DNA of 64,000 bases, from positions 62,001 to 126,000 of IMG/VR virus record IMGVR_UViG_3300028840_002431; one strand, given 5' to 3'. Below the pieces are notes generated by a model. The model worked only from the letters and a program-made list of their open reading frames with translations. It had not been told where the DNA came from and ran no database searches. Positions 1 through 32,672 of the stretch are shown here, in pieces (within the stretch, counting starts at the first letter, position 1; every line of letters begins with the position of its first letter). Both the position numbers and the translations under genes were made by a program.

Positions 1-510
1 CTCCATGTTGGACCCAACCAACTCCACGAGATCTTCCGGCTCTGTGGCGGGACCCCTGTTGGCGTTGCCATCCGTGAAGAGAATGACCCTTAGGATGACC
101 TCCGACGACAGGTCCGCCTCTTGGGCAAGTTCAAAACCCTTGAGAAGCGCGTCGGCAATGTTGGTGGACCCTCTCGTCTGAAGATCGCTAACCTTACGTT
201 TCAGATCCTCCTTGGCTTCGGCGGTACAAGGTACGGGCCTTGAGATCACCTGGGCAGATTCGGAGAAGTCGATCAGGCCGCAGTAATCGTTCGGTGAGAG
301 GTGCTCGATCAACTTGGTCAGCGAGCGTTTCGCGTAGACGAGCTTTGACCCCATCATAGAGCCGGACACGTCCACGAGCGGTATGATGCACAACCGGGGT
401 CGCTTGTCTTCGACCGACACCGACGGTGCTGACAGCCCTAGGACAAGGTGGGCTTCGTTTTCCAGGTCAAACTGGACTTTATCAAATGTGAGTTTCGCAC
501 TAATTTCCAT
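1..510 (-). CDS. vWA domain protein (YfbK-like), runs off the window edge
   Basis: Hand translation from ATG at 510 (RBS GGAGG): MEISAKLTFDKV...RPRLCIIPLVDVSGSMMGSKL...GSTNIADAL...RVILFTDGNAN. MIDAS DxSxS, T and D motifs present. Confidence 0.85.
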   Translation of the reverse strand, partial: MEISAKLTFDKVQFDLENEAHLVLGLSAPSVSVEDKRPRLCIIPLVDVSGSMMGSKLVYAKRSLTKLIEHLSPNDYCGLIDFSESAQVISRPVPCTAEAKEDLKRKVSDLQTRGSTNIADALLKGFELAQEADLSSEVILRVILFTDGNANRGPATEPEDLVELVGSNME

Positions 511-694
511 GGCTTTGGTCCTCCCGTAGCCGTCTGGCCTAGCAACTTCCCCTGGTGCGGGCCTGGACTGACCCCAAAACCAAAGGACCGCTAAGCGGTC
601 ACAGAACGTCCACCGCCTTTCCAAACCTCGGATTTTCCTTAGGCGCGATCAGCGGCACGAGAGACCCAACCCGGAGGCGCGGCCTCACGCTTAC

Positions 695-723
695 CATGAT
701 ATACACCGGAAAAGGGAAGTCAA
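695..723 (-). promoter_or_regulatory. sigma70-like promoter for the vWA gene
   Basis: Minus strand TTGACT-N16-TATCAT about 190 nt upstream of the ATG. Confidence 0.45.
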
Positions 724-753
724 GTTCTTATTTGTGCCGGTGTAAGATCCAAG

Positions 754-5949: not shown

Positions 5950-6209
5950 TATGGTCCCGACACACCTGTTCCTTTCTTCTTGTCCCACTTACGAAACTCG
6001 TTCCAGGAGTCGAAGTGGCGTCTCGTCACACCCTTGAAATACTTCCACATATCACTCGCTTTGAACTTGAACGGGCCGCTGACAGCGGCAGCACAATAAC
6101 CACCGGAACAGGTGTATTCCCACTCGCCGGTCTCTTTATTCTCGACACTGCCGAATGTGTCGCCCCCGCAAACGGGACACGAAAACTCTGTCCTGTGTTG
6201 AGTGATCAT
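5949..6209 (-). CDS. small zinc-ribbon-like protein
   Basis: CPVCGG..CSGGYC, overlapping start/stop. Confidence 0.6.
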   Translation of the reverse strand: MITQHRTEFSCPVCGGDTFGSVENKETGEWEYTCSGGYCAAAVSGPFKFKASDMWKYFKGVTRRHFDSWNEFRKWDKKKGTGVSGP

Positions 6210-6409
6210 GGTCTCCGACGATACCCCAGCGACTCCTGGGTGTGTGGTGTTAGCTCCAGGGCGATCTCGAAACTGGTACTAGAATGGGAAGAAGCGACTA
6301 CAGCCACCTCAGGAGGGTTGGCCAGCTTCTTGGCTTGGTCGATGGCCTGAACAAGTTCGCGAACGGTTTGCTCCGTAATCTGAACAGTTGCGCCCTTCAG
6401 GGTAGTCAT
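6206..6409 (-). CDS. hypothetical protein
   Basis: ATGA overlaps at both ends. Confidence 0.5.
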   Translation of the reverse strand: MTTLKGATVQITEQTVRELVQAIDQAKKLANPPEVAVVASSHSSTSFEIALELTPHTQESLGYRRRP

Positions 6410-6792
6410 AGCTTCTGCCACTCCGGGAACGGTCTTTCTTCCGACCGGTCCCACCAACGGTAGCGGTAGCCCTGGAAGCCCCGAATCTTCTGGTCGATCG
6501 TGACAGCTACGGCGTCACCACCTCGAACCAGGGCAAAGCTGTCCTTGAAGTAGACGGGAACGTTCGTGTCGTAGCATACGGGGTCGTCGTCTATCCGTAT
6601 CAACGGCGAGTATCCGATAAGGTGGCCGCTGTAGACCACATAAACACGGTCGCCGGGTTGCAGCTTCTTCGGCGGGCTGCCCCCCATGAACCAACCCCAC
6701 TCCGTGCCGCTCCATTTGGCCCCGGCCGGGTCGCCCTCTGCAATCCAGCGCTTGAGTCCGAAAGACTTGGGCAACGTGACTACAATGTCCAT
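6406..6792 (-). CDS. possible EVE/ASCH (PUA-like) domain protein
   Basis: KLQPGDRVYVVYSGHLIGY resembles the EVE/ASCH core. Confidence 0.45.
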   Translation of the reverse strand: MDIVVTLPKSFGLKRWIAEGDPAGAKWSGTEWGWFMGGSPPKKLQPGDRVYVVYSGHLIGYSPLIRIDDDPVCYDTNVPVYFKDSFALVRGGDAVAVTIDQKIRGFQGYRYRWWDRSEERPFPEWQKL

Positions 6793-7926: not shown

Positions 7927-8868
7927 TTAGACGTGCCTGTAAACCACGAGTTGTCCCGTTCGCTCCGCTTCCAGGATAACGGACGGTAGGCTCTCAAGGG
8001 TCAGTAGGTCGTCTCCCTTCTCTCCGGTGTCATGATCTGTTAAACACACCCCAGAATCGATAATCCTAAGAGTTTTCTTGTCGCACGTACATTCGAACCG
8101 CCGCCGCTTGAGCCGGTACTTAACGATCATCTCGTTCTTGCGGTGCCCGGCACGTTGATCCAGAAGCACAGCCCCGCCTACCGCTAAAGCGGCCTTTGCG
8201 GCCTCCTCGAAGTCCAGGAGAGCCATTTCCCGACGGCCAGCGCCGTCTCCCAGCTTCTCGACGATCTCGCGTCTACGGGCCTCCTTTTGACGCTCCTCTT
8301 CTTCCCGCTGGCGCTTTTCGGCAAGCTCCCGCCGACGCTTCTCTGCCTCCTTCCGTTGGAAGATCTCCATCCGGAAAGCGGCATCCAGGGCCGGGGAAAC
8401 ATCCTTGATGTCGGCCACGGAATCCTTGCCGTCCAGGTACGCCGTCAGAACGTCCATCTCCGGACCCAGCGGCATCTCTTGTTGCATGAAAAAGAGCGGG
8501 CCGTCCTCACACATACGCCCGGCAGAGACGTACACGAACCGGTCCAGAAACGGCTCGATCAGGTGGACGCGCTCCGCGTTGGCCACGATATCCGCGATCT
8601 TCGGCTCAACTCGAACGTCACGCGGGACCAGCCTGTCTCCGACCAAATAACCCATGACCTTACCCATGAGCAGATCAGTGTCAGAATCGTCGGCCTGTCG
8701 GAGAACACGCGCCCGCCGACCGTTCAGGGAGAAGACTACCCAACCGTGCTCATCCGGCAAACGGCCGTCGATGGTCCACTGTCGTGAACCCGACCGGAGA
8801 GACCTACCCCCGACCCATGGCGAAACCAGGGTTTCATCCTTAGTCTGTAGTAGGTCTCTCCAAGTCAT
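7927..8868 (-). CDS. coiled-coil protein with putative divergent E2 (UBC-like) C-terminal domain
   Basis: RIIDSGVCL followed by LTLESLPSVI resembles E2 GxICL plus following helix, and sits beside JAB and Ubl. Confidence 0.5.
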   Translation of the reverse strand: MTWRDLLQTKDETLVSPWVGGRSLRSGSRQWTIDGRLPDEHGWVVFSLNGRRARVLRQADDSDTDLLMGKVMGYLVGDRLVPRDVRVEPKIADIVANAERVHLIEPFLDRFVYVSAGRMCEDGPLFFMQQEMPLGPEMDVLTAYLDGKDSVADIKDVSPALDAAFRMEIFQRKEAEKRRRELAEKRQREEEERQKEARRREIVEKLGDGAGRREMALLDFEEAAKAALAVGGAVLLDQRAGHRKNEMIVKYRLKRRRFECTCDKKTLRIIDSGVCLTDHDTGEKGDDLLTLESLPSVILEAERTGQLVVYRHV

Positions 8869-8899
8869 GGTTCAACTATTACACCGGTTAGAGTTAGAA

Positions 8900-10783
8900 T
8901 CAAGCTGCCCAAGCGGGCTTGGTCAGCAACTCAGTGTTGAGGATGAGATCGACCAGCGATACTCTGGGAGCCGCCGCCTTTCTGGACGCCTTGCCCACCG
9001 GAGTAGCCGCGATCAGGTCTCTGATGGTGCGGGGAATCGCGTACGGGTCCGCGAAGATCCCCTCGTCGATCATGAAGCACGGGATACCGAGATTGGCCGC
9101 CGTGTCCTGGACCGCCGTGTAGCCGCGAGTGCCGCCTACCTTGAGGAACCCGAAAGCAACCGGGTTGAGGCCGGAAGACCTCACGGAATCGGAGAAGTCG
9201 TACGCCTCTTCGTCGCCCACGAAGATGAAGATCACGTCTTCATCGTCCTCAGGCTTGAAGGACTGGAGTACCCTGACGCCCGCTCCGTAATCGGTGCCGC
9301 CGCCCGCCCTGAAACCACGGAAAGCTTGCTCGACACCAGCCGACGAGTTCTGCTTGATCTTCACAACACGACCGGAGGTGTTGAACACCGACACGTGAGT
9401 CCGCTCCAGGGGGAACCCCTGTAGGAACTGGGTCAGGTACCGCTTAGCCGTCGGAATGGCCTTGTGCATGGAGGACGAAACGTCCACACAGAAGTAGATT
9501 CTCTGGCTATTGAGCACCTCTGCGACGGCCTTCTTGACAGCGTTGTCGGCCGCCTCCGACAGCTTCTCCTGGGTCTTCTTGGACTTGACACGCTGGGCGA
9601 TGTTGGCCGCCCGCATGTCTTCGGCCTCCTTGACCGCCGTCTCCCACCGAACCCGGATGTCCTGGACATCCAACAGTCCAAGCTCTTCCAGAGTCGGGGT
9701 CGCGATGATCAGGTCCTTGTTGGACAGGGACCCGACCTCGATGGCAGCCGCCATGACAGCCCTGGTCACACCGTCCTTGGGCAGAAGACCCACGACCCGC
9801 TTCCAGTTCGGCCGGTCCTGGGTGATCTTCTCGCAGATCTGCTCTTCGGTCAGACCCTCCCAGGATTCCGCCGCCTTGACCTCCTGGCCGATGGCGATGC
9901 TCCGGTGCCCCTCCTTGGACTGCGCTTGCTTCCAACGAAGGGTCTCGAAGAACTTGCCGGTGTTCGGCTTGTATCCGACCTTACGGGCCAGATCCATCAC
10001 CGTACGCCGGAAGCCCGCGTTGACCAGACCTTCCAGCATCTTGGGGTTCTCTTCCCGGTACCGTAGCCACTTCTCCACGGCCTTGGGCCAACGACCCAGG
10101 AACGGCTTACGAGCGGACTTACCGAAACCGAGATCCCGGTTGATCTTGGCGACGGCCGGTAGGCTCAGAACATCGTGGACCCTCATGAGCAACTTCGGGT
10201 TGAAGCTGACCTTGCCGTCCTTGCCCTTGGTGGTGATCAGGAACATGGCCTCGCCAACGTCACGGTAGTCCTCGTCGAGGAACGCGACCTTGCCCTTGTC
10301 CAGGACCGGATCACCCTTACGGGTTTGAACGAGCATGAAGGCTGCCAGGATGACCTTGAGGTCCCGGTGCTCCTGGCCGTATGCGTAGGAGGCCCACTTG
10401 GCCGCGAACTCGTTATCGAGATTCCAGACTTCCGCGACCTGCTTGTAGACCCACTCAACAACGTCCGGGTACAACCCGGCCGGTTGGTACTTGCCTACAA
10501 CCCGACGACCGTCCCGAACACGCCCGTCATTGCTGAGCTTGCCCAGCTTGACCTTGGTGCTCTTGCGGCCGACCTTACGCAATTCGTAAACGATCTTGTC
10601 GCCGTTCTCCTCTACGTGAGTGACCGGCAACCACTTAGAACCCACGACCGATCCGGTGTCGGTAACTGCGATACCAGCACGGTTGTGGACAGCATGGCCC
10701 GAGTGAGAGAGGACCGTCTGTAGGATTCTCTCAGCCGGTCCGAGATTCTCGTTTTGCATGTTATCCATCCGATCTGCCCGCAC
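8900..10783 (-). CDS. Ro60/TROVE-like protein: long basic helical region plus C-terminal vWA
   Basis: vWA motifs CVDVSSSM, GGGTDY, FIFVGDEE are clear. The TROVE assignment is inferred from architecture and segments KAVEKWL and DLARKVGYKP. Real start may be ATG 10768 or 10759. Confidence 0.65.
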   Translation of the reverse strand: MRADRMDNMQNENLGPAERILQTVLSHSGHAVHNRAGIAVTDTGSVVGSKWLPVTHVEENGDKIVYELRKVGRKSTKVKLGKLSNDGRVRDGRRVVGKYQPAGLYPDVVEWVYKQVAEVWNLDNEFAAKWASYAYGQEHRDLKVILAAFMLVQTRKGDPVLDKGKVAFLDEDYRDVGEAMFLITTKGKDGKVSFNPKLLMRVHDVLSLPAVAKINRDLGFGKSARKPFLGRWPKAVEKWLRYREENPKMLEGLVNAGFRRTVMDLARKVGYKPNTGKFFETLRWKQAQSKEGHRSIAIGQEVKAAESWEGLTEEQICEKITQDRPNWKRVVGLLPKDGVTRAVMAAAIEVGSLSNKDLIIATPTLEELGLLDVQDIRVRWETAVKEAEDMRAANIAQRVKSKKTQEKLSEAADNAVKKAVAEVLNSQRIYFCVDVSSSMHKAIPTAKRYLTQFLQGFPLERTHVSVFNTSGRVVKIKQNSSAGVEQAFRGFRAGGGTDYGAGVRVLQSFKPEDDEDVIFIFVGDEEAYDFSDSVRSSGLNPVAFGFLKVGGTRGYTAVQDTAANLGIPCFMIDEGIFADPYAIPRTIRDLIAATPVGKASRKAAAPRVSLVDLILNTELLTKPAWAA

Positions 10784-25619: not shown

Positions 25620-25909
25620 CGTTTCCGCCAGCCGCCGTTCGCTCTAGACCGCCAATACTGAATCCAGTTAGTGCTACAGGTCTTGCACCGGTATAGCGAA
25701 GCATCTCGTATAGGTCGTCTGTCCCGCTCCAGGAGTCCCTTACAGTCAGGGCACTCGTACCCCCCGTCTGTCTTGGTGGGCTGTTCTTCGGACCCGTACA
25801 AGCCAGCGTGGAGACGCCGACCCGGAGGGTGTTCGAGAGCCTCGAAAAGCCGGTTTGACGCTTTCGCTACAGCGTCAGGATCGCTGAGTAATTTTGGTTT
25901 GTCGGACAT
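25616..25909 (-). CDS. zinc-ribbon hypothetical protein
   Basis: CPDC..CKTC, start MSDKPK (the longer ORF overlaps tmRNA). Confidence 0.6.
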   Translation of the reverse strand: MSDKPKLLSDPDAVAKASNRLFEALEHPPGRRLHAGLYGSEEQPTKTDGGYECPDCKGLLERDRRPIRDASLYRCKTCSTNWIQYWRSRANGGWRKR

Positions 25910-26025
25910 GGGTATAATTGATTGGCCTTGAAACGCACAATCTGGCCTGATCGGGACCAGCACGGGTGCCCTGTGCATCTTCACCCTACCCGGCACCGAA
26001 TAGGGTACGTGTTCCAGGGCCAATC

Positions 26026-26405
26026 GGTGGAGTCGGCGGGAATCGAACCCGCGTCCGAAAGTGCTACTAATTACCACCTCTACGTGTGTAGCTCCATTTC
26101 GTGTCTTTGACAGGAACACCACCGGAGCGGGCAAAACCTGGGGGCGGCCTCACGGCTGCCACTTCCACCACTGGTCTAAACAACCTTGATTGAGGACGAC
26201 CAGAGACTGCGCCTCAACTGCACCGGCTAATCGTCGCCCCATCCAAAGACGCCGGATTCTCTGGCGGGACGCCCTAGGCCGCGATGGCCAGGGGTGCTGC
26301 GTTATCGTTCGCAGTTATGTTTGAGCGGCTTGATAACCCGGCCAGCCGATCAACCGGGACACGCAGTAGTAAATTCCACACCTCCGTCGAAACCTTTACG
26401 ACCCC
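26026..26405 (-). ncRNA. ssrA: tmRNA, one-piece, tag ANDNAAPLAIAA (26274..26312)
   Basis: 5' GGGGTCGTAAAGGTTTCGAC, 3' GGACGCGGGTTCGATTCCCGCCGACTCCACC, G3-U70, resume context ATAACT GCG. Confidence 0.96.
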
Positions 26406-27990: not shown

Positions 27991-28563
27991 TTACTTTCGG
28001 TTCGGCCGCCCACGACCTTTATTCAGAGCCTTATAAGTGGGCGTCAAAGCATGGCAGTTAGGGCATATCAATCTAAGATTCTCTTCAGTGTTGTTTTTAT
28101 GGTCTCCGTCCACATGATCGACCTCAAGAGGTATCTTCTGACCCATCCACGTCTTTCGGCCACAACTCGCACATCTGTACTCTCTAGTCCGTAACAGATA
28201 CCGGCGAATATTGGCTGAATTTTTGATATCTTCTAGTTTCTTCCGCCGACTGGAAAGATGTACCCCCTCGTCGATACAGTCTCTACAATACTTGTTCTTA
28301 CCCGACGGCTTGCCGCACGCAGCGCAATATCTCGGGTCCTTAATTACCCGGTGCCTCGTGAAGTTGACGTATTTACCCGCGCAGGAATGGTTACAAAATT
28401 TGCCATAGCGTTTCTCGTAAGGCAGAGGCTCCCCGCACAATTTACATTTAGGGGCAGCTTGTTCGTGTTTGCGTACGGCTTCGTCGTGCCTTTTTTGACG
28501 GCACTTGTCTAAGACTTTGCTAACCTTCGCGTAACCTTTCTTTCCCGCCGCGCTATGATCCAT
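27991..28563 (-). CDS. HNH endonuclease
   Basis: LEVDHVDGDHKNNTEENLRLICPNCH, several Zn motifs. Confidence 0.9.
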   Translation of the reverse strand: MDHSAAGKKGYAKVSKVLDKCRQKRHDEAVRKHEQAAPKCKLCGEPLPYEKRYGKFCNHSCAGKYVNFTRHRVIKDPRYCAACGKPSGKNKYCRDCIDEGVHLSSRRKKLEDIKNSANIRRYLLRTREYRCASCGRKTWMGQKIPLEVDHVDGDHKNNTEENLRLICPNCHALTPTYKALNKGRGRPNRK

Positions 28564-29259: not shown

Positions 29260-29334
29260 GGGCCTCCTGACGGGAATCGAACCCGCTAATACCTGACCCA
29301 CAATCAGGCCGCTATCCATTTGCGTTCAGAAGGC
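29260..29334 (-). tRNA. tRNA-His(GTG) with G-1
   Basis: G-1:C73, loop TTGTGGG. Confidence 0.88.
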
Positions 29335-30845: not shown

Positions 30846-30970
30846 GAACGTTCGAGTTGCTTGAGCAGATTGGTTAGCAAAATGGGATTCGAACCCATGC
30901 CTTTCCGGTTGATAGCCAGATGTCCTTCCACTGGACGATTCGCTTGTATGCTCTGACAGATTGAACGCCC
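30846..30970 (-). ncRNA. tRNA-chimeric RNA copy 10: D, anticodon (ATC) and T arms, conserved domain replaces the acceptor stem
   Basis: GGGCGTT CAATC..GAGCA TACAAGC, tRNA arms, CTGCTC..ACTCG AACGTTC. Confidence 0.87.
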
Positions 30971-31015: not shown

Positions 31016-31357
31016 TTCGTCGTCTCTCAAGTGGTCCCACAGCGTCGGCCTTTCTCCGACCTCCACAGGCGTCGGCTCTGGGTCTGGCAGTGGCTTCGGG
31101 GTTTGAGCCTCCCACGCTAAATAAGGAGGGGGTATGATCGGCGCTGACGTGTCCGGAGGCACCGTCGAGAGAACCACATAACAAATGGTCCCGTCCGGCC
31201 CCTTCACACAAAGGTGGTGTTGCTCGTCCACGAAGATCTGCAACCCATTGCCCTGGAAGTTGTCTATATCAAACCTACCCACGGCGGTGATCGCAGCCGG
31301 TTGTTCGTCGGGAGGAATGTTACGATCAACCACACGATCGCGATCGTCATTAGGCAT
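30998..31357 (-). CDS. hypothetical protein
   Basis: GGTGTA-N10-ATG, Pro-rich tail, LWDHL end similar to LWDYL in 43775..44359. Confidence 0.7.
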   Translation of the reverse strand: MPNDDRDRVVDRNIPPDEQPAAITAVGRFDIDNFQGNGLQIFVDEQHHLCVKGPDGTICYVVLSTVPPDTSAPIIPPPYLAWEAQTPKPLPDPEPTPVEVGERPTLWDHLRDDEGKDGQ

Positions 31358-31375
31358 GGCCCGATCCTACACCGA

Positions 31376-31450
31376 TGGCTCCAGGGGAGGGAGTCGAACC
31401 CACGATGTACCGGTTAACAGCCGGTTGCCTTACCACTTGGCTACCCTGGA
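31376..31450 (-). tRNA. tRNA-Asn(GTT)
   Basis: Cloverleaf, CCA. Confidence 0.93.
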
Positions 31451-31495
31451 AAAAGAAGGGTGAGGAACCTTTTTGGGCCAAAAGGCCCTCACCCC
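31451..31495 (-). terminator. intrinsic terminator-like hairpin inside the tRNA array
   Basis: GGGGTGAGG..CCTCACCCT followed by TCTTTT. Confidence 0.5.
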
Positions 31496-31562
31496 GTGAA
31501 TCCGATTACTGCCGCTCGACCCGAAGATCGCACGACCGCAACCGTCTCACCGAAATCATCAA

Positions 31563-31575
31563 TTTTCAAAGAACA
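31563..31575 (-). promoter_or_regulatory. boxA-like antitermination site
   Basis: TGTTCTTTGAAAA matches rrn boxA form. Confidence 0.7.
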
Positions 31576-31591
31576 ACGTCAACGCTTCTAC

Positions 31592-31666
31592 GGTGGGTGC
31601 AAAAGGACTCGAACCTTTTCAGACCAGCTTAAGAGGCTGGTGCCCGTCCAGTCGGGCGCTGCACCC
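31592..31666 (-). tRNA. tRNA-Lys(CTT)
   Basis: Loop CTCTTAA. Confidence 0.88.
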
Positions 31667-31673
31667 TATCTAT

Positions 31674-31748
31674 TGGTAGGGTCGGTGGGAATCGAACCCA
31701 CAACCGTCGGGTTAAAAGCCCGCTGCTCTACCGTTGAGCCACGACCCC
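31674..31748 (-). tRNA. tRNA-Lys(TTT)
   Basis: Loop CTTTTAA, CCA. Confidence 0.93.
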
Positions 31749-31807
31749 ATAGTCGGGTTGCGGACTTTCGTTTTATTCGGCTCTTCATCGTTCTATCCTC
31801 TCTTTCT

Positions 31808-31896
31808 TGGTGGAGCGTGGTTGGAGTCGAACCACACACCCCGAAGGGAACGGGTTTACAGCCCGTCAGCTTCTACCGGAAGCCTAATCACGCTCC
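31808..31896 (-). tRNA. tRNA-Tyr(GTA), 8-bp acceptor
   Basis: GGAGCGTG/CACGCTCC-ACCA, loop CTGTAAA, variable arm. Confidence 0.85.
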
Positions 31897-31967
31897 ATGA
31901 GTTCGTGCGCGTGGAGCGTAAATAAGATTCGTGTAATGGTTTTCGTAACATTGTGAAAATTCTCCTT

Positions 31968-32041
31968 AAACGCCAAAGGCCACCTGGGTTTCCCTAGGCG
32001 GCCTTAGATCTCTCTCACGAGTAATAACTAATGGCCGCCTA
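31968..32041 (-). promoter_or_regulatory. attenuator: antiterminator strand (32033-32041) competing with terminator hairpin (31976-32005)
   Basis: TAGGCGGCC is complementary to GGCCGCCTA, the left arm of AAGGCCGCCTAGGGAAACCCAGGTGGCCTTTGGCGTTT. Confidence 0.7.
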
Positions 32042-32191
32042 TGTATCCACCTCCAAATTCTGGCGACTAATAAATTCGGAGGCGGGCATATGGGTCGTGA
32101 CGCAACCGAGATATGCGGCTCCCAGGACGCACCACGACGCCGCAAGTTTCGCTTGCTTGGCGCGTATTGATAATGTGGTCCGGGAAGTCAT
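32039..32191 (-). CDS. leader peptide (50 aa, all 20 amino acids)
   Basis: MTSRTTLSIRAKQAKLAASWCVLGAAYLGCVTTHMPASEFISRQNLEVDT*, stop codon overlaps the antiterminator strand. Confidence 0.6.
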   Translation of the reverse strand: MTSRTTLSIRAKQAKLAASWCVLGAAYLGCVTTHMPASEFISRQNLEVDT

Positions 32192-32366
32192 TGTCTTAAC
32201 TCACTGGTTACTCGTACAAGATATAAGTACACCTTGATGGGGTGTCTGGCAAGAGAAATCGACGGCCTTATGTTCTTTTTTATTCAGACCCGCGAAATAC
32301 CCAATGGTTATCGCTAGATGGCGTCAAGGACGCCTTGAGGCCGGTACATCCTTATATAGTAGGCCG

Positions 32367-32672
32367 TTACCTCGATAGCCGTTTGATGCTTTCCCGAACA
32401 GCTTCTCTAACTGCCTGGAGCAAGTAGATAGGCTTGGGGGTGGGCCGTAGTGGATCGCCGTTCGCATCGACATAGATGTCCAGACTCTCGCCAGTGTTGG
32501 ACTTGATCATCACCAAGTATTGATCCACCTCAAGCGGGCCGTTCCGTCTGTACGCGCCGAAGGAGTAGTCAGGGATGACCGTGACATCCAACTTGACGGA
32601 GAACTTATCTCGCTTGACGGGGGCGGCCTCTTTGGACAACGCCTCTTCAAAAGCCTTACGTGGTTTACCCAT
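32367..32672 (-). CDS. hypothetical protein (PRKAFE tag)
   Basis: GGAGG RBS, MGKPRKAFEEAL. Confidence 0.7.
   Translation of the reverse strand: MGKPRKAFEEALSKEAAPVKRDKFSVKLDVTVIPDYSFGAYRRNGPLEVDQYLVMIKSNTGESLDIYVDANGDPLRPTPKPIYLLQAVREAVRESIKRLSR

Follow-up and report, generated by a model that had tools for sequence, protein, structure and literature searches.

We found that the first two tRNA genes of a jumbo phage tRNA array, tRNA-Tyr(GUA) and tRNA-Lys(UUU), are each preceded by a short conserved leader ORF with its own Shine-Dalgarno (SD) site; each leader runs into the tRNA gene that follows and carries, directly or closely downstream of a codon for the cognate amino acid, a segment able to pair with the 5′ strand of that tRNA. 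Folding predicts that the precursors have no acceptor stem in their minimum-energy structure and that a ribosome placed at or just after the conserved Tyr or Lys codons could release it. We favor, with moderate confidence only, an interpretation as a leader-peptide attenuator whose output is the folding and maturation of a tRNA; translation, ribosome pausing and an effect on processing were not examined experimentally. We found no published description.

RESULTS

Leader ORFs in the window

The window, the whole 64 000-nt stretch that was analyzed (positions 62 001 to 126 000 of IMG/VR record IMGVR_UViG_3300028840_002431), is part of a 416-kb uncultured jumbo phage with 52 tRNAs and a tmRNA; all tRNAs of the window lie on the - strand. 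An earlier note, made from the sequence alone, had claimed that two codon-matched leader ORFs run into tRNA-Tyr and tRNA-Lys and can pair with their 5′ strands. This observation is confirmed, and it proved stronger than the window alone suggests: the two ORFs, their SD sites, the Tyr and Lys codons and the complementarity to the tRNA 5′ strands are where the note had placed them (Table 1).

Table 1. Features of the leader region (window coordinates; all on the - strand)
Coordinates	Feature	Observations
32224..32252	Sigma-70-like promoter: TTGCCA (32252..32247), 17-nt spacer, TG-extended TACTTA (32229..32224)	The only plausible source of the transcript that reaches the leaders; both hexamers and the spacing conserved in six relatives; not listed by a simple consensus scan
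32039..32191	Conserved 50-codon ORF (..LAASWCVL..RQNLEVDT, then stop) with an internal conserved hairpin; the stop is followed by GGCGGCC, complementary to the 5′ arm of the next hairpin	Covariation in the hairpin; no Pfam or PHROG match
31968..32003	Conserved GC-rich hairpin (32003..31978) followed by TTTGGCGTTT (31977..31968); terminator-like, with an interrupted U tract, directly before the Tyr-leader SD	Consensus structure with compensatory pairs; does not meet a strict T-tract rule
31962..31967	SD of the Tyr leader, AAGGAG, 10 nt before the ATG	SD-like purine blocks at 5-10 nt in all five lineages
31856..31951	Tyr leader ORF, 31 codons, ATG start, MLRKPLHESYLRST..; conserved core codons 3-12, RKPLHESYLR (31945..31916)	Ends at the TAA formed by the anticodon loop of tRNA-Tyr
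31922..31924	Invariant Tyr codon TAT, the proposed sensor codon	TAT in all 5 fetched lineages, unchanged in 2 contig variants
31912..31921	Anti-acceptor segment TTACGCTCCA, directly after the Tyr codon; pairs with tRNA-Tyr positions -1..+9	Predicted helix extends 5′ through the H-E-S-Y codons to the D-arm region; the -1 pair changes from A-U to G-C in lineage L016; lineage L013 has a different acceptor strand and a matching different leader segment
31888..31897	TGGAGCGTGA, partner of the anti-acceptor	10 bp, including one G.U; 14-nt loop
31808..31896	tRNA-Tyr(GUA) with encoded CCA, first of the array	Atypical: 8-bp acceptor helix, long D stem, weak T stem; ARAGORN call
31797..31802	SD of the Lys leader, GAGAGG, 8 nt before the ATG and 5 nt after the CCA of tRNA-Tyr	SD in all seven lineages
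31666..31788	Lys leader ORF, MKSRIKRK..; the ATG lies inside a longer GTG ORF; Lys at codons 2, 6 and 8; conserved core codons 4-8, R-I-K-R-K (31779..31765)	Reads through the whole tRNA-Lys(UUU); position of the end not conserved among relatives
31751..31763	Anti-5′-strand segment of the Lys leader: CCGCAACC (31763..31756) with GGUCGUGG (tRNA positions 3-10, one A.C mismatch); alternative, CGACU (31755..31751) with GGUCG	Weak in the window; relatives have 7-9-bp helices of different sequence that match their own tRNA
31674..31748	tRNA-Lys(UUU), canonical	ARAGORN; Rfam RF00005, 71.5 bits
31592..31666	tRNA-Lys(CUU), 7 nt downstream, no leader of its own	The stop codon of the Lys leader ORF abuts its 5′ end; RF00005, 47.3 bits

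The 5′ end of tRNA-Tyr had to be corrected: ARAGORN places it 2 nt too far in; the continuous 8-bp acceptor helix starts at G31896. In a scan of 31300..32400 with Rfam models (E up to 1) only tRNA-clan matches and two chance hits were returned. Both Lys tRNAs scored above the RF00005 gathering threshold of 29 bits, while the best clan match of tRNA-Tyr was the tRNA-Sec model at 39.6 bits, below its threshold of 47; ARAGORN called the gene Tyr in 4 of 5 lineages and the family consensus cloverleaf shows covariation, so that its standing as a canonical elongator tRNA was left undecided by these scores.

The Lys pairing named in the earlier note, CCCGACT (31757..31751) with GGTCG, is present, but amounts to only 5 bp and is not the conserved one; the CCGCAACC pairing is the better candidate.

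Within the window the evidence against chance is limited. The duplex of the Tyr leader with the tRNA 5′ strand (-15.9 kcal/mol) is the best of all 52 tRNAs in the genome and was reached by 0 of 300 shuffles; however, tRNA-His at 29260 is nearly as good, and after correction for 52 tests the Tyr result is borderline. The Lys duplex (-9.4 kcal/mol, shuffle P 0.55) is not above chance, and the Lys leader ranks only 4th of 52 when compared with all tRNA 5′ strands of the genome. ORFs of such length are everywhere; 27 ORFs of at least 20 aa occur in 1.1 kb. What lifts both leaders above chance is conservation in relatives.

Conservation in relatives

A search for the same arrangement in related phages had been proposed in the earlier note as a check; we saw that seven diverged relatives keep the arrangement. 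Relatives whose neighboring protein is 40-59% identical keep the order Tyr, Lys(UUU), Lys(CUU), Asn. The Tyr leader is conserved as a peptide, RKPLHESY(L/R)R: pairwise differing codons are 36 synonymous and 10 non-synonymous in frame, against 13/43 and 4/43 in the other frames; Ser is encoded by TCT, AGT or AGC, Leu by TTA or CTG, and Arg by CGA, AGA or CGC. Two further contig variants show five changes in the core, all synonymous. The Lys core R-(I/L)-K-(R/T)-K is kept in most lineages, with Arg and Leu/Ile encoded by differing codons. SD-like sites are present at about 4-10 nt in all 12 leaders of seven lineages.

The proposed sensor codons are the minor synonymous ones: TAT makes up 30% of Tyr codons and AAA 28% of Lys codons in the long ORFs of the phage, yet TAT in the Tyr leaders and a central AAA in the Lys leaders (7 of 7 lineages) are invariant. 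They sit 0-10 nt 5′ of a segment that co-varies with the tRNA 5′ strand. As the leader:tRNA helix slides along the 5′ strand between lineages (positions 1-9, 2-9, 3-10, 4-11 and 6-12), a column-wise covariation count was not attempted; a permutation test of cognate versus non-cognate pairings was used instead. Cognate duplexes beat non-cognate ones, for Tyr with P = 0.008 (the true assignment being the best of all 120) and for Lys with P = 0.005; 8 of 12 leaders have shuffle P of 0.03 or less. On the other hand, the Lys pairing is weak in the window and in L013, and the Tyr pairing is weak in lineage L023 (shuffle P 0.17-0.28). The Lys leader of L023 is only 7 codons long, with one Lys, and the Lys leaders hold almost as many Arg as Lys codons, so they are basic rather than specifically Lys-rich.

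Predicted folding

All 12 precursors form 0 of 7 acceptor pairs in their minimum-energy fold. Without a ribosome the probability of the acceptor stem is near zero in 10 of the 12 precursors (the exceptions being L013 Tyr, 0.16, and L016 Lys, 0.55); it rises to 0.2-0.9 when a footprint (-15 to +12 nt around the A site) is placed at or 1-4 codons after the conserved Lys or Tyr codons. In the window the modeled ON zone for Tyr begins 1-4 codons after the Tyr codon, at rare UUA and CGC codons. Nearest-neighbor folding ignores tRNA tertiary structure and modifications, and no RNA or ribosome data exist for this phage (no RNA sequencing run holds the region), so expression was not examined; mutually exclusive pairings selected by ribosome position are seen in silico only.

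An analogue in Xanthomonas phages

The Xanthomonas jumbo phages XacN1 and Xoo-sp13 carry an independent analogue. XacN1 has MNKPYYKRYYAKA and Xoo-sp13 has MNKLYYKRYYKKLP, each ending in a stop codon and each behind a sigma-70 promoter; nested alternative hairpins follow, then an 8-bp anti-acceptor (duplex -15.3 and -17.4 kcal/mol, shuffle P 0.002 each) ahead of tRNA-Lys, tRNA-Lys and tRNA-Tyr. These leaders have 4 Tyr and 3-4 Lys in 13-14 codons. Xoo-sp13 folds into two near-isoenergetic states, -46 kcal/mol (OFF) and -45 kcal/mol (tRNA folded).

Searches without further instances

In the cultured-phage collection no close relative was found by megablast or blastn beyond tRNA bodies, nor by tblastn with the neighboring 344-aa protein. 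Pattern scans of IMG/VR and metagenomes with the tRNA-Tyr D arm and degenerate back-translations of the leader peptide returned only the phage's own second contig or chance hits without tRNAs; one contig, L002, is identical to the window. Homologues of the 119-aa array protein gave no new contigs, and the contigs carrying P0008 and P0011 end before the leader region. The other 50 tRNAs of this genome show nothing comparable. The tRNA-Lys or tRNA-Tyr neighborhoods of RSP15, BUCTxx99, Phosso, Cp1R7A-A1 and Xanthomonas phage X1 show no comparable leader in their annotation tables, although these five loci were not scanned for short unannotated ORFs. Neither the upstream small ORF nor its neighbors match a Pfam or PHROG family, and there is no RNA ligase in this genome. 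We also considered whether the pairing originated from a tRNA remnant; however, the 9-nt copy of the tRNA-Tyr 3′ end in the leader does not extend into wider homology with the tRNA (local alignment P about 0.04 for the 9-mer alone, 0.25 with softer scoring), and this origin was rejected.

DISCUSSION

In the interpretation that we favor, the 3′ part of each leader is an anti-acceptor. When no ribosome is on the leader, or after a ribosome has run through it, the leader would pair with the tRNA 5′ strand; the acceptor stem then could not form, and the precursor would not be a proper substrate for RNase P and 3′ processing (the OFF state). A ribosome held at the conserved Tyr codon (UAU), or at the Lys codons (AAA, AAG), would sit directly 5′ of the anti-acceptor and cover it, so that the tRNA transcribed behind it would fold natively and be cut out (the ON state). 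As dwell time at those codons would depend on the supply of charged cognate tRNA, each tRNA would be matured when its own decoding capacity is low, for example, when host tRNA-Tyr or tRNA-Lys is depleted by anticodon-nuclease defenses. The analysis itself established the ORFs and SD sites, their amino-acid-level conservation, the invariant minor codons, the co-variation of the anti-acceptor with the tRNA, and a predicted OFF fold with a ribosome-position-dependent ON fold; that the leaders are translated, that ribosomes pause there and that the fold decides maturation is our inference.

The earlier note had proposed that a ribosome stalled on the cognate codon masks the anti-tRNA segment and lets the tRNA fold and be processed, giving demand control for each tRNA. 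This interpretation is partly supported: every prediction that sequence comparison can address came out as the model requires, and an independent phage lineage has a Tyr/Lys-rich leader ahead of Lys-Lys-Tyr tRNAs. We do not go further since, besides the lack of experimental data, the Lys pairing that the note had named is not the conserved one, and only two of the 52 tRNAs show the arrangement. Also, the Tyr leader has a single Tyr codon inside a strongly conserved decapeptide, which a pure codon sensor does not need; this hints at a contribution of the nascent peptide or of neighboring rare codons rather than simple codon counting.

The main alternative, which we consider unlikely but not negligible, retains the RNA switch but not the signal: the conserved nascent peptide (RKPLHESYxR; basic R-I/L-K-R-K) or the adjacent rare codons (UUA, CGA) would arrest or slow the ribosome, constitutively or in response to another cue, such as a small molecule, host state or a phage factor. 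Conservation over 10 residues of the Tyr leader, the rare codon (UUA at 7.5% of Leu, CGA at 11% of Arg) that follows the Tyr or Lys codon in most lineages, and the position of the ON zone in the window agree with this view; however, the invariant residue nearest each anti-acceptor is the cognate one for both tRNAs, the XacN1 and Xoo-sp13 leaders are simple Tyr/Lys runs (7-8 of the 12-13 codons after the start) with no shared arrest-like motif, and the peptide resembles no arrest peptide known to us, although this resemblance was not tested. Somewhat less likely still, the helix could be a constitutive processing or decay element, such as an RNase III or RNase E site or a folding guide for an atypical tRNA, with the ORFs only opening or protecting the RNA, or supplying ribosomes that shield the transcript, and nothing sensing demand. 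The predicted helix in the window, an imperfect duplex of about 20 bp reaching into the D arm, is a plausible double-strand nuclease substrate, and tRNA-Tyr is structurally atypical; yet this reading explains neither why the minor cognate codons are invariant and placed directly 5′ of the anti-acceptor, nor the Tyr/Lys-rich leader and the multi-hairpin, bistable layout in XacN1 and Xoo-sp13, and the canonical tRNA-Lys(UUU) needs no folding guide.

Transcriptional polarity or attenuation, in which leader translation controls Rho-dependent or intrinsic termination ahead of or inside the array and the tRNA pairing is secondary, appears doubtful. The conserved 50-codon ORF, a possible antiterminator (the GGCGGCC after its stop) and a hairpin with a T-rich tail do lie directly upstream, but no U tract follows the leader:tRNA helices, the co-varying segment is the tRNA acceptor strand itself, and the upstream hairpin fails a standard terminator rule. 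It is also improbable that the leaders simply encode small functional peptides overlapping tRNAs for genome economy, with incidental pairing: the Tyr leader is strongly conserved as a peptide, but only the first 8-12 residues are conserved, the rest being dictated by the tRNA sequence, the stop position varies from 7 to 40 codons, and the pairing co-varies with the tRNA. Chance ORFs and chance complementarity in a tRNA-dense region could be argued from the abundance of short ORFs, the weak statistics within the window and the 9-nt repeat; this reading is very unlikely, being refuted, as far as sequence comparison can go, by the synonymous-substitution pattern, SD sites and co-varying pairing in seven lineages, with an independent analogue in cultured phages.

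The closest precedent is ribosome-mediated transcription attenuation by leader peptides (trp, his, pheA, thr, leu and ilv operons; pheST leader), where a short SD-led ORF carries codons for the amino acid concerned, ribosome position chooses between mutually exclusive RNA pairings and the signal is the supply of charged cognate tRNA; the XacN1 and Xoo-sp13 version even has the nested layout of alternative hairpins. Here, however, the regulated helix is the acceptor stem of a tRNA and not an intrinsic terminator, the tRNA body rather than a U tract follows, the product is the tRNA itself, making the loop autogenous, and in the window family the ORF runs into the tRNA. With 1-4 Lys codons in the first 8-9 codons of the Lys leaders and one TAT in the Tyr leader, the codon counts do not tell either way whether the several regulatory codons of a trp/his-type attenuator are present. 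In translational attenuation (ermC, cat and cmlA leaders) a ribosome stalled on a short leader likewise covers one arm of a hairpin and frees the other; the freed arm here is a tRNA 5′ strand, not an SD or start codon, and no drug-dependent arrest peptide is evident, though peptide-induced arrest was not assayed. T-box riboswitches are also cis-acting RNAs responding to the state of one specific tRNA, but they bind uncharged tRNA directly, are not translated and control aminoacyl-tRNA synthetase and amino-acid genes; neither the T-box model nor any other Rfam family outside the tRNA clan, two chance hits aside, matched here. Pairing of a 5′ leader with the acceptor region is expected to hinder RNase P recognition and cleavage of tRNA precursors, an effect that was not tested here; known cases are incidental or constitutive, while here the pairing is conserved, co-varies with the tRNA and is coupled to a translated ORF in the proposed model. 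Like tmRNA, which the phage also encodes, the RNA combines a tRNA part and a short coding part; here the coding part lies 5′ of an elongator tRNA and overlaps it, with no sign of trans-translation function.

tRNA-Tyr and tRNA-Lys are known targets of anti-phage nucleases (retron-Eco7 PtuAB on tRNA-Tyr; PrrC on tRNA-Lys), and phage copies rescue infection (PMC11555353, PMC10264068); those studies describe supply by strong promoters, or resistant anticodon loops, and not demand-gated maturation. One could speculate, tentatively, that giant phages carry a previously unrecognized class of ‘tRNA attenuators’, in which leader peptides rich in the cognate codons gate the folding and maturation of the very tRNA that decodes them; the class would be concentrated on tRNA-Lys and tRNA-Tyr, the tRNAs that host anticodon nucleases destroy, and the phage would sense the damage through ribosome stalling and release its replacement tRNA on demand.

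The arrangement warns annotators that short ORFs overlapping phage tRNA genes are not always spurious, and its existence in cultured Xanthomonas phages makes it directly testable at the bench. If the favored interpretation is true, leader-peptide attenuation would be extended to a new output, the folding and maturation of a tRNA, and this would be the first case known to us in which a tRNA gene is controlled through the decoding of its own codon. It would give a concrete, testable answer to when and why phage tRNAs are made, would offer a compact sensor of the supply of a specific tRNA that could be used in engineering, and would link phage tRNA arrays to host tRNA-cleaving defenses, which target Lys and Tyr tRNAs.

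Setting of the leader ORFs

The IMG/VR virus record from which the window (bases 62001-126000) is taken is 416 539 bp long; ARAGORN found in it 52 tRNA genes and a tmRNA, with 43 of the tRNAs located on the - strand of the window. The tRNA-Tyr(GUA) gene is the 5'-most gene of this array and is followed by tRNA-Lys(UUU), tRNA-Lys(CUU) and tRNA-Asn. No cultured phage was similar at the DNA level beyond the tRNA bodies. An ORF of an HNH endonuclease, a likely mobile element, sits inside the array.

The earlier note had described two leader ORFs with ribosome binding sites, running into tRNA-Tyr and tRNA-Lys, with cognate codons placed just before segments able to pair with the tRNA 5' strands; everything it described is present in the sequence, and the observation is confirmed. 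The Tyr leader is a 31-codon ORF beginning MLRKPLHESYLRST, with AAGGAG 10 nt before its ATG; codon 10 is TAT, and the next ten bases pair with position -1 plus the first nine bases of tRNA-Tyr. The continuous 8-bp acceptor helix shows that the tRNA starts two bases before the ARAGORN call. The second ORF, behind GAGAGG, begins MKSRIKRK and reads through the whole of tRNA-Lys(UUU). Coordinates of all features are collected in the table below.

Coordinates of the leader ORFs, the tRNA genes and other features considered
Feature	Sequence	Coordinates	Strand
SD-like AAGGAG of the Tyr leader	window	31967..31962	-
ATG of the Tyr leader	window	31951	-
TAT, codon 10 of the Tyr leader	window	31924..31922	-
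Anti-acceptor segment TTACGCTCCA	window	31921..31912	-
Its target TGGAGCGTGA	window	31897..31888	-
First base (G) of tRNA-Tyr	window	31896	-
tRNA-Tyr(GUA)	window	31808..31896	-
tRNA-Tyr(GUA)	L013	5252..5334	
tRNA-Tyr(GUA)	L016	12435..12523	
tRNA-Tyr(GUA)	L023	3340..3424	
tRNA-Tyr(GUA)	L024	6258..6343	
GAGAGG of the Lys leader	window	31802..31797	-
ATG of the Lys leader	window	31788	-
Upstream region (promoter, 50-codon ORF, terminator-like hairpin)	window	31968..32252	-
Sigma-70-like promoter	window	32252..32224	-
50-codon ORF	window	32191..32039	-
GC-rich hairpin with T-rich tail	window	32003..31968	-
tRNA called Asp, anticodon ATC	window	30871..30945	-
tRNA-Arg(ACG) at this place	L013	6262..6335	
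tRNA-Asn(ATT)	L016	13052..13125	
tRNA-His(GTG) (with its upstream 70 nt)	window	29260..29333	-
HNH endonuclease ORF	window	27991..28563	-
Two overlapping tmRNA calls	window	25655..26405	-
Standard tmRNA call	window	26026..26405	-
tRNA-Pro(CGG), outside the window	G000:C1	224796-224872	
Tyr/Lys-rich mini-ORF of XacN1	L029 (AP018399.1 30282-31158, reverse complement)	about 688..729	-
Tyr/Lys-rich mini-ORF of Xoo-sp13	L031 (MN047793.1)	268..312	
SD-led ORF before four tRNA-Lys genes	L030 (LR745206.1 342807-343691, reverse complement)	about 528..556	-
Cys-rich small ORF and tRNA-Pro(CGG) (L023), RNA ligase gene (L023, L024), CCA-adding enzyme gene (L016, L018)	L023; L023; L024; L016	3425..3731; 6061..6672; 9721..10332; 8233..9738	

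Within the window alone, the arrangement exceeds chance only weakly. The duplex of the Tyr leader with the tRNA 5' strand (-15.9 kcal/mol) is the best among the 52 tRNAs and was not reached by any of 300 shuffles; the Lys duplex is ordinary (-9.4 kcal/mol, shuffle P 0.55). When each leader was compared with all 52 tRNA 5' strands, the Tyr leader preferred its own tRNA (rank 1), while the Lys leader ranked 4th; ORFs of this size are found everywhere. The leader of a tRNA-His(GTG) is almost as good as the Tyr leader, with the second-best complementarity to its own 5' strand (-15.3 kcal/mol, shuffle P 0.007); there, an SD-led ATG ORF runs into the tRNA, but it holds only one His codon. Outside the window, tRNA-Pro(CGG) is preceded by a GGAGG-led ORF, beginning MFNCFIEPEDPGHPCVRGTGHV, with three Pro codons (duplex -14.2 kcal/mol, shuffle P 0.04). 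The Tyr leader also carries a 9-nt copy of the tRNA-Tyr 3'-end, which does not extend into a tRNA remnant.

Conservation in relatives

Presence of the same arrangement in related phages had been named in advance as a check, with absence of leader conservation counting against the idea; the leaders turned out to be conserved. The 344-aa protein encoded about 0.7 kb upstream has homologs at 40-59% identity on metagenomic contigs, some of about 400 kb. Six of these contigs (L013, L014, L016, L020, L023 and L024) carry a syntenic tRNA array and, together with the window, make seven lineages. Five lineages have tRNA-Tyr (the window, L013, L016, L023 and L024) and all seven have tRNA-Lys(UUU); ARAGORN missed tRNA-Tyr in L016 and tRNA-Lys(UUU) in L020, although both are plainly there.

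Leader peptides and pairing of the Lys leader with the tRNA-Lys 5' strand in the seven lineages
Lineage	Start of Tyr leader	Start of Lys leader	Lys leader segment	tRNA-Lys segment
window	MLRKPLHESYLR	MKSRIKRK	CCGCAACC	GGUCGUGG (one mismatch)
L013	MLRKPLHESYLR	MKRLKRK	UGCGAUC	GGUCGUG
L014		MRKRLKRK	GAUGAUCC	GGGUCGUC
L016	MMREPLHESYLR	MKKRIKTK	GCUACGAU	AUCGUAGC
L020		MIRKERIKR	GCUACGCC	GGCGUAGC
L023	MITHRKPLHESYRR	MEDRLKR, then stop	GCUGCUUCU	GGAGGUAGC
L024	MFTHRKPLHESYRR	MKELKRSY	AGCUACG	CGUAGCU

The Tyr leader is conserved as a peptide. Each of the five ORFs has an SD-like block 5-10 nt upstream, and codons differ while residues stay the same: Arg is encoded by CGA, AGA or CGC; Lys by AAA or AAG; Pro by CCA or CCG; Leu by TTA or CTG; His by CAC or CAT; Ser by TCT, AGT or AGC. 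Over the ten core codons, pairwise differing codons were 36 synonymous to 10 non-synonymous in frame, in comparison with 13/43 and 4/43 in the other two frames. In two further variants, seen as contigs in other runs, the five changes within the core were all synonymous; one of the variants also turns a C-G pair of the anti-acceptor helix into U.G. After the core the peptides diverge completely, as is expected if this part is constrained as RNA.

The Lys leader keeps a core R-(I/L)-K-(R/T)-K; the Arg and Leu/Ile codons vary and an SD is present in every lineage. The end of this ORF is not conserved; its length ranges from 7 codons to a read through the whole tRNA. The Tyr codon is TAT in every lineage and the central Lys codon is AAA in seven of seven, although in 144 long ORFs of this phage TAT makes 30% of Tyr codons and AAA makes 28% of Lys codons. 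AAA is the codon read by the UUU anticodon of the tRNA that follows.

The anti-acceptor segment co-varies with the tRNA. In the Tyr leaders, (i) L016 has the helix of the window, but with G-C instead of A-U at position -1; (ii) L013 has a different acceptor strand (GCGUCGG), and its leader has CCGAUGC; (iii) L024 pairs CCACAG with CUGUGG, and CCCGA with UCGGG. We computed duplex energies for every leader against the 5' strand of every lineage. For Tyr, the true assignment was the best of all 120 permutations (P 0.008); for Lys, it was in the best 0.5%. Eight of the 12 leaders had individual shuffle P of 0.03 or less; the weak ones were L023 (Tyr) as well as the window and L013 (Lys). The anti-segment starts 0-10 nt after the Tyr codon or after the last conserved Lys codon.

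The tRNA-Tyr(GUA) family is itself atypical: it has an 8-bp acceptor helix, a 5-7-bp D stem with a 3-5-nt loop, a short variable arm and, in the window and L016, a 3-bp T stem; it fits the Rfam tRNA-Sec model better than the general tRNA model. In the window, a tRNA called Asp with anticodon ATC sits where L013 has tRNA-Arg(ACG), while L016 has a tRNA-Asn(ATT); A34 anticodons outside Arg are unusual and may mark anticodon-shifted or non-standard tRNAs. In L023 a Cys-rich small ORF and a tRNA-Pro(CGG) are inserted between tRNA-Tyr and the Lys leader. L023 and L024 carry an RNA ligase gene (PF09414) inside the array, which is absent from the genome of the window, and L016 and L018 (a further contig) have a CCA-adding enzyme gene next to the array.

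Predicted folding of the precursors

In all 12 precursors the minimum-energy fold pairs the leader with the tRNA 5' strand and forms none of the seven acceptor pairs. In the window this predicted helix extends through the H-E-S-Y codons into the D-arm region, about 20 imperfect pairs. In the partition function, the acceptor stem has probability near zero without a ribosome in most precursors. We then masked a ribosome footprint (15 nt 5' to 12 nt 3' of the first A-site base) codon by codon; nearest-neighbor folding of tRNAs is crude, thus the outcome shows consistency and is not proof. The probability rose to 0.2-0.9 from K6-K8 onwards in the Lys leaders of the window, L014, L016 and L023; from L4/K5 onwards in the Lys leader of L024; from the Tyr codon onwards in the Tyr leaders of L013 and L024; and from one to four codons later in the Tyr leaders of the window and L016.

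An independent analog in Xanthomonas phages

A tRNA-Lys hit led to Xanthomonas phage XacN1 (384 670 bp), in which a 13-codon ORF on the tRNA strand, MNKPYYKRYYAKA followed by a stop, precedes tRNA-Lys(CUU), tRNA-Lys(UUU) and tRNA-Tyr. Phage Xoo-sp13 (309 kb) has MNKLYYKRYYKKLP, also followed by a stop, directly behind a promoter, TTGACA-17 nt-TAAATA; both mini-ORFs lie behind a sigma-70 promoter, ahead of tRNA-Lys, tRNA-Lys and tRNA-Tyr. Seven or eight of the 12-13 codons after the start are Tyr or Lys. Our binomial estimate for XacN1 is about 5e-5, assuming a 10% background for Lys plus Tyr (the observed share is 8.7% in the phage of the window, from the codon counts in its long ORFs).

Downstream, the Tyr/Lys codons can pair with a second segment; that segment can pair with a third, and the third is an 8-bp anti-acceptor for the following tRNA 5' strand. 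The anti-acceptor duplexes are -15.3 and -17.4 kcal/mol, each with shuffle P 0.002, with compensatory differences between the two phages. The Xoo-sp13 RNA has two near-isoenergetic predicted folds: one (-46 kcal/mol) contains the anti-acceptor helix, the other (-45 kcal/mol) a complete cloverleaf. This is the layout of a classical attenuator with a tRNA in place of the terminator. In XacN1 the sequence right after the anti-acceptor looks like a decayed tRNA 5' half.

In a 634-kb uncultured phage (LR745206) an SD-led ORF, MKTKLKYKR, ends in AAA CGA TAG as in L023; a strong hairpin and four tandem tRNA-Lys genes follow, but no clear anti-acceptor was found at this locus.

Upstream region and tmRNA

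The leaders have no room for a promoter of their own. A conserved sigma-70-like promoter lies upstream, followed by a conserved 50-codon ORF (including LAASWCVL and ending RQNLEVDT at its stop) with an internal co-varying hairpin; a conserved, terminator-like GC-rich hairpin with a T-rich tail ends about ten bases before the Tyr-leader SD. The bases after the stop of the 50-codon ORF (TAGGCGGCC) are complementary to the 5' arm of that hairpin, and L016 carries a matching one-base deletion on both sides. This may be a further, transcriptional tier of control, possibly a classical attenuator in front of the whole array; we did not resolve it. ARAGORN reported two overlapping tmRNA calls in the window, of which the standard one has the tag ANDNAAPLAIAA; the relative L016 has ANDNAVAPLAKAA at the syntenic place. 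If RNase P cuts the tRNA out of a leader transcript, the leader ORF loses its stop codon, so a phage tmRNA could be relevant.

Interpretation

The interpretation offered in the earlier note, a stalled ribosome releasing the tRNA from its leader, is partly supported and is the best-supported reading. In this view, the leader is a translated sensor and its 3' part traps the tRNA 5' strand; a ribosome held at the cognate codons would mask the trap, so that the tRNA folds and can be excised. Our data show the architecture, its conservation, the co-variation and the thermodynamic plausibility of the switch, whereas translation, pausing and the consequence for RNase P are inferred.

The main uncertainty concerns the nature of the signal: the conserved Tyr decapeptide and the rare codons next to the sensor codons leave room for an arrest that depends on the peptide or on the neighboring codons. 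A constitutive processing role, a transcriptional role, functional micropeptides and chance are weaker rivals.

The proposed device would work like leader-peptide attenuation and like ermC-type translational attenuation; however, it fails the defining feature of each, as there is no terminator and no sequestered SD. It is not a T-box. Searches of the paper library for leader peptides combined with phage tRNAs or tRNA operons found nothing relevant, and the XacN1 paper does not mention a leader or attenuation. We regard the arrangement as a new form of leader-peptide attenuation, of high interest and directly testable in cultured Xanthomonas phages.

tRNA-Tyr and tRNA-Lys are the targets of retron-Eco7 PtuAB and of PrrC, and phage tRNAs rescue infection. 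Both phage families place this device on exactly these tRNAs; the link to defense is an inference. If the reading is correct, feedback on each tRNA would run through the decoding capacity for its own codon.
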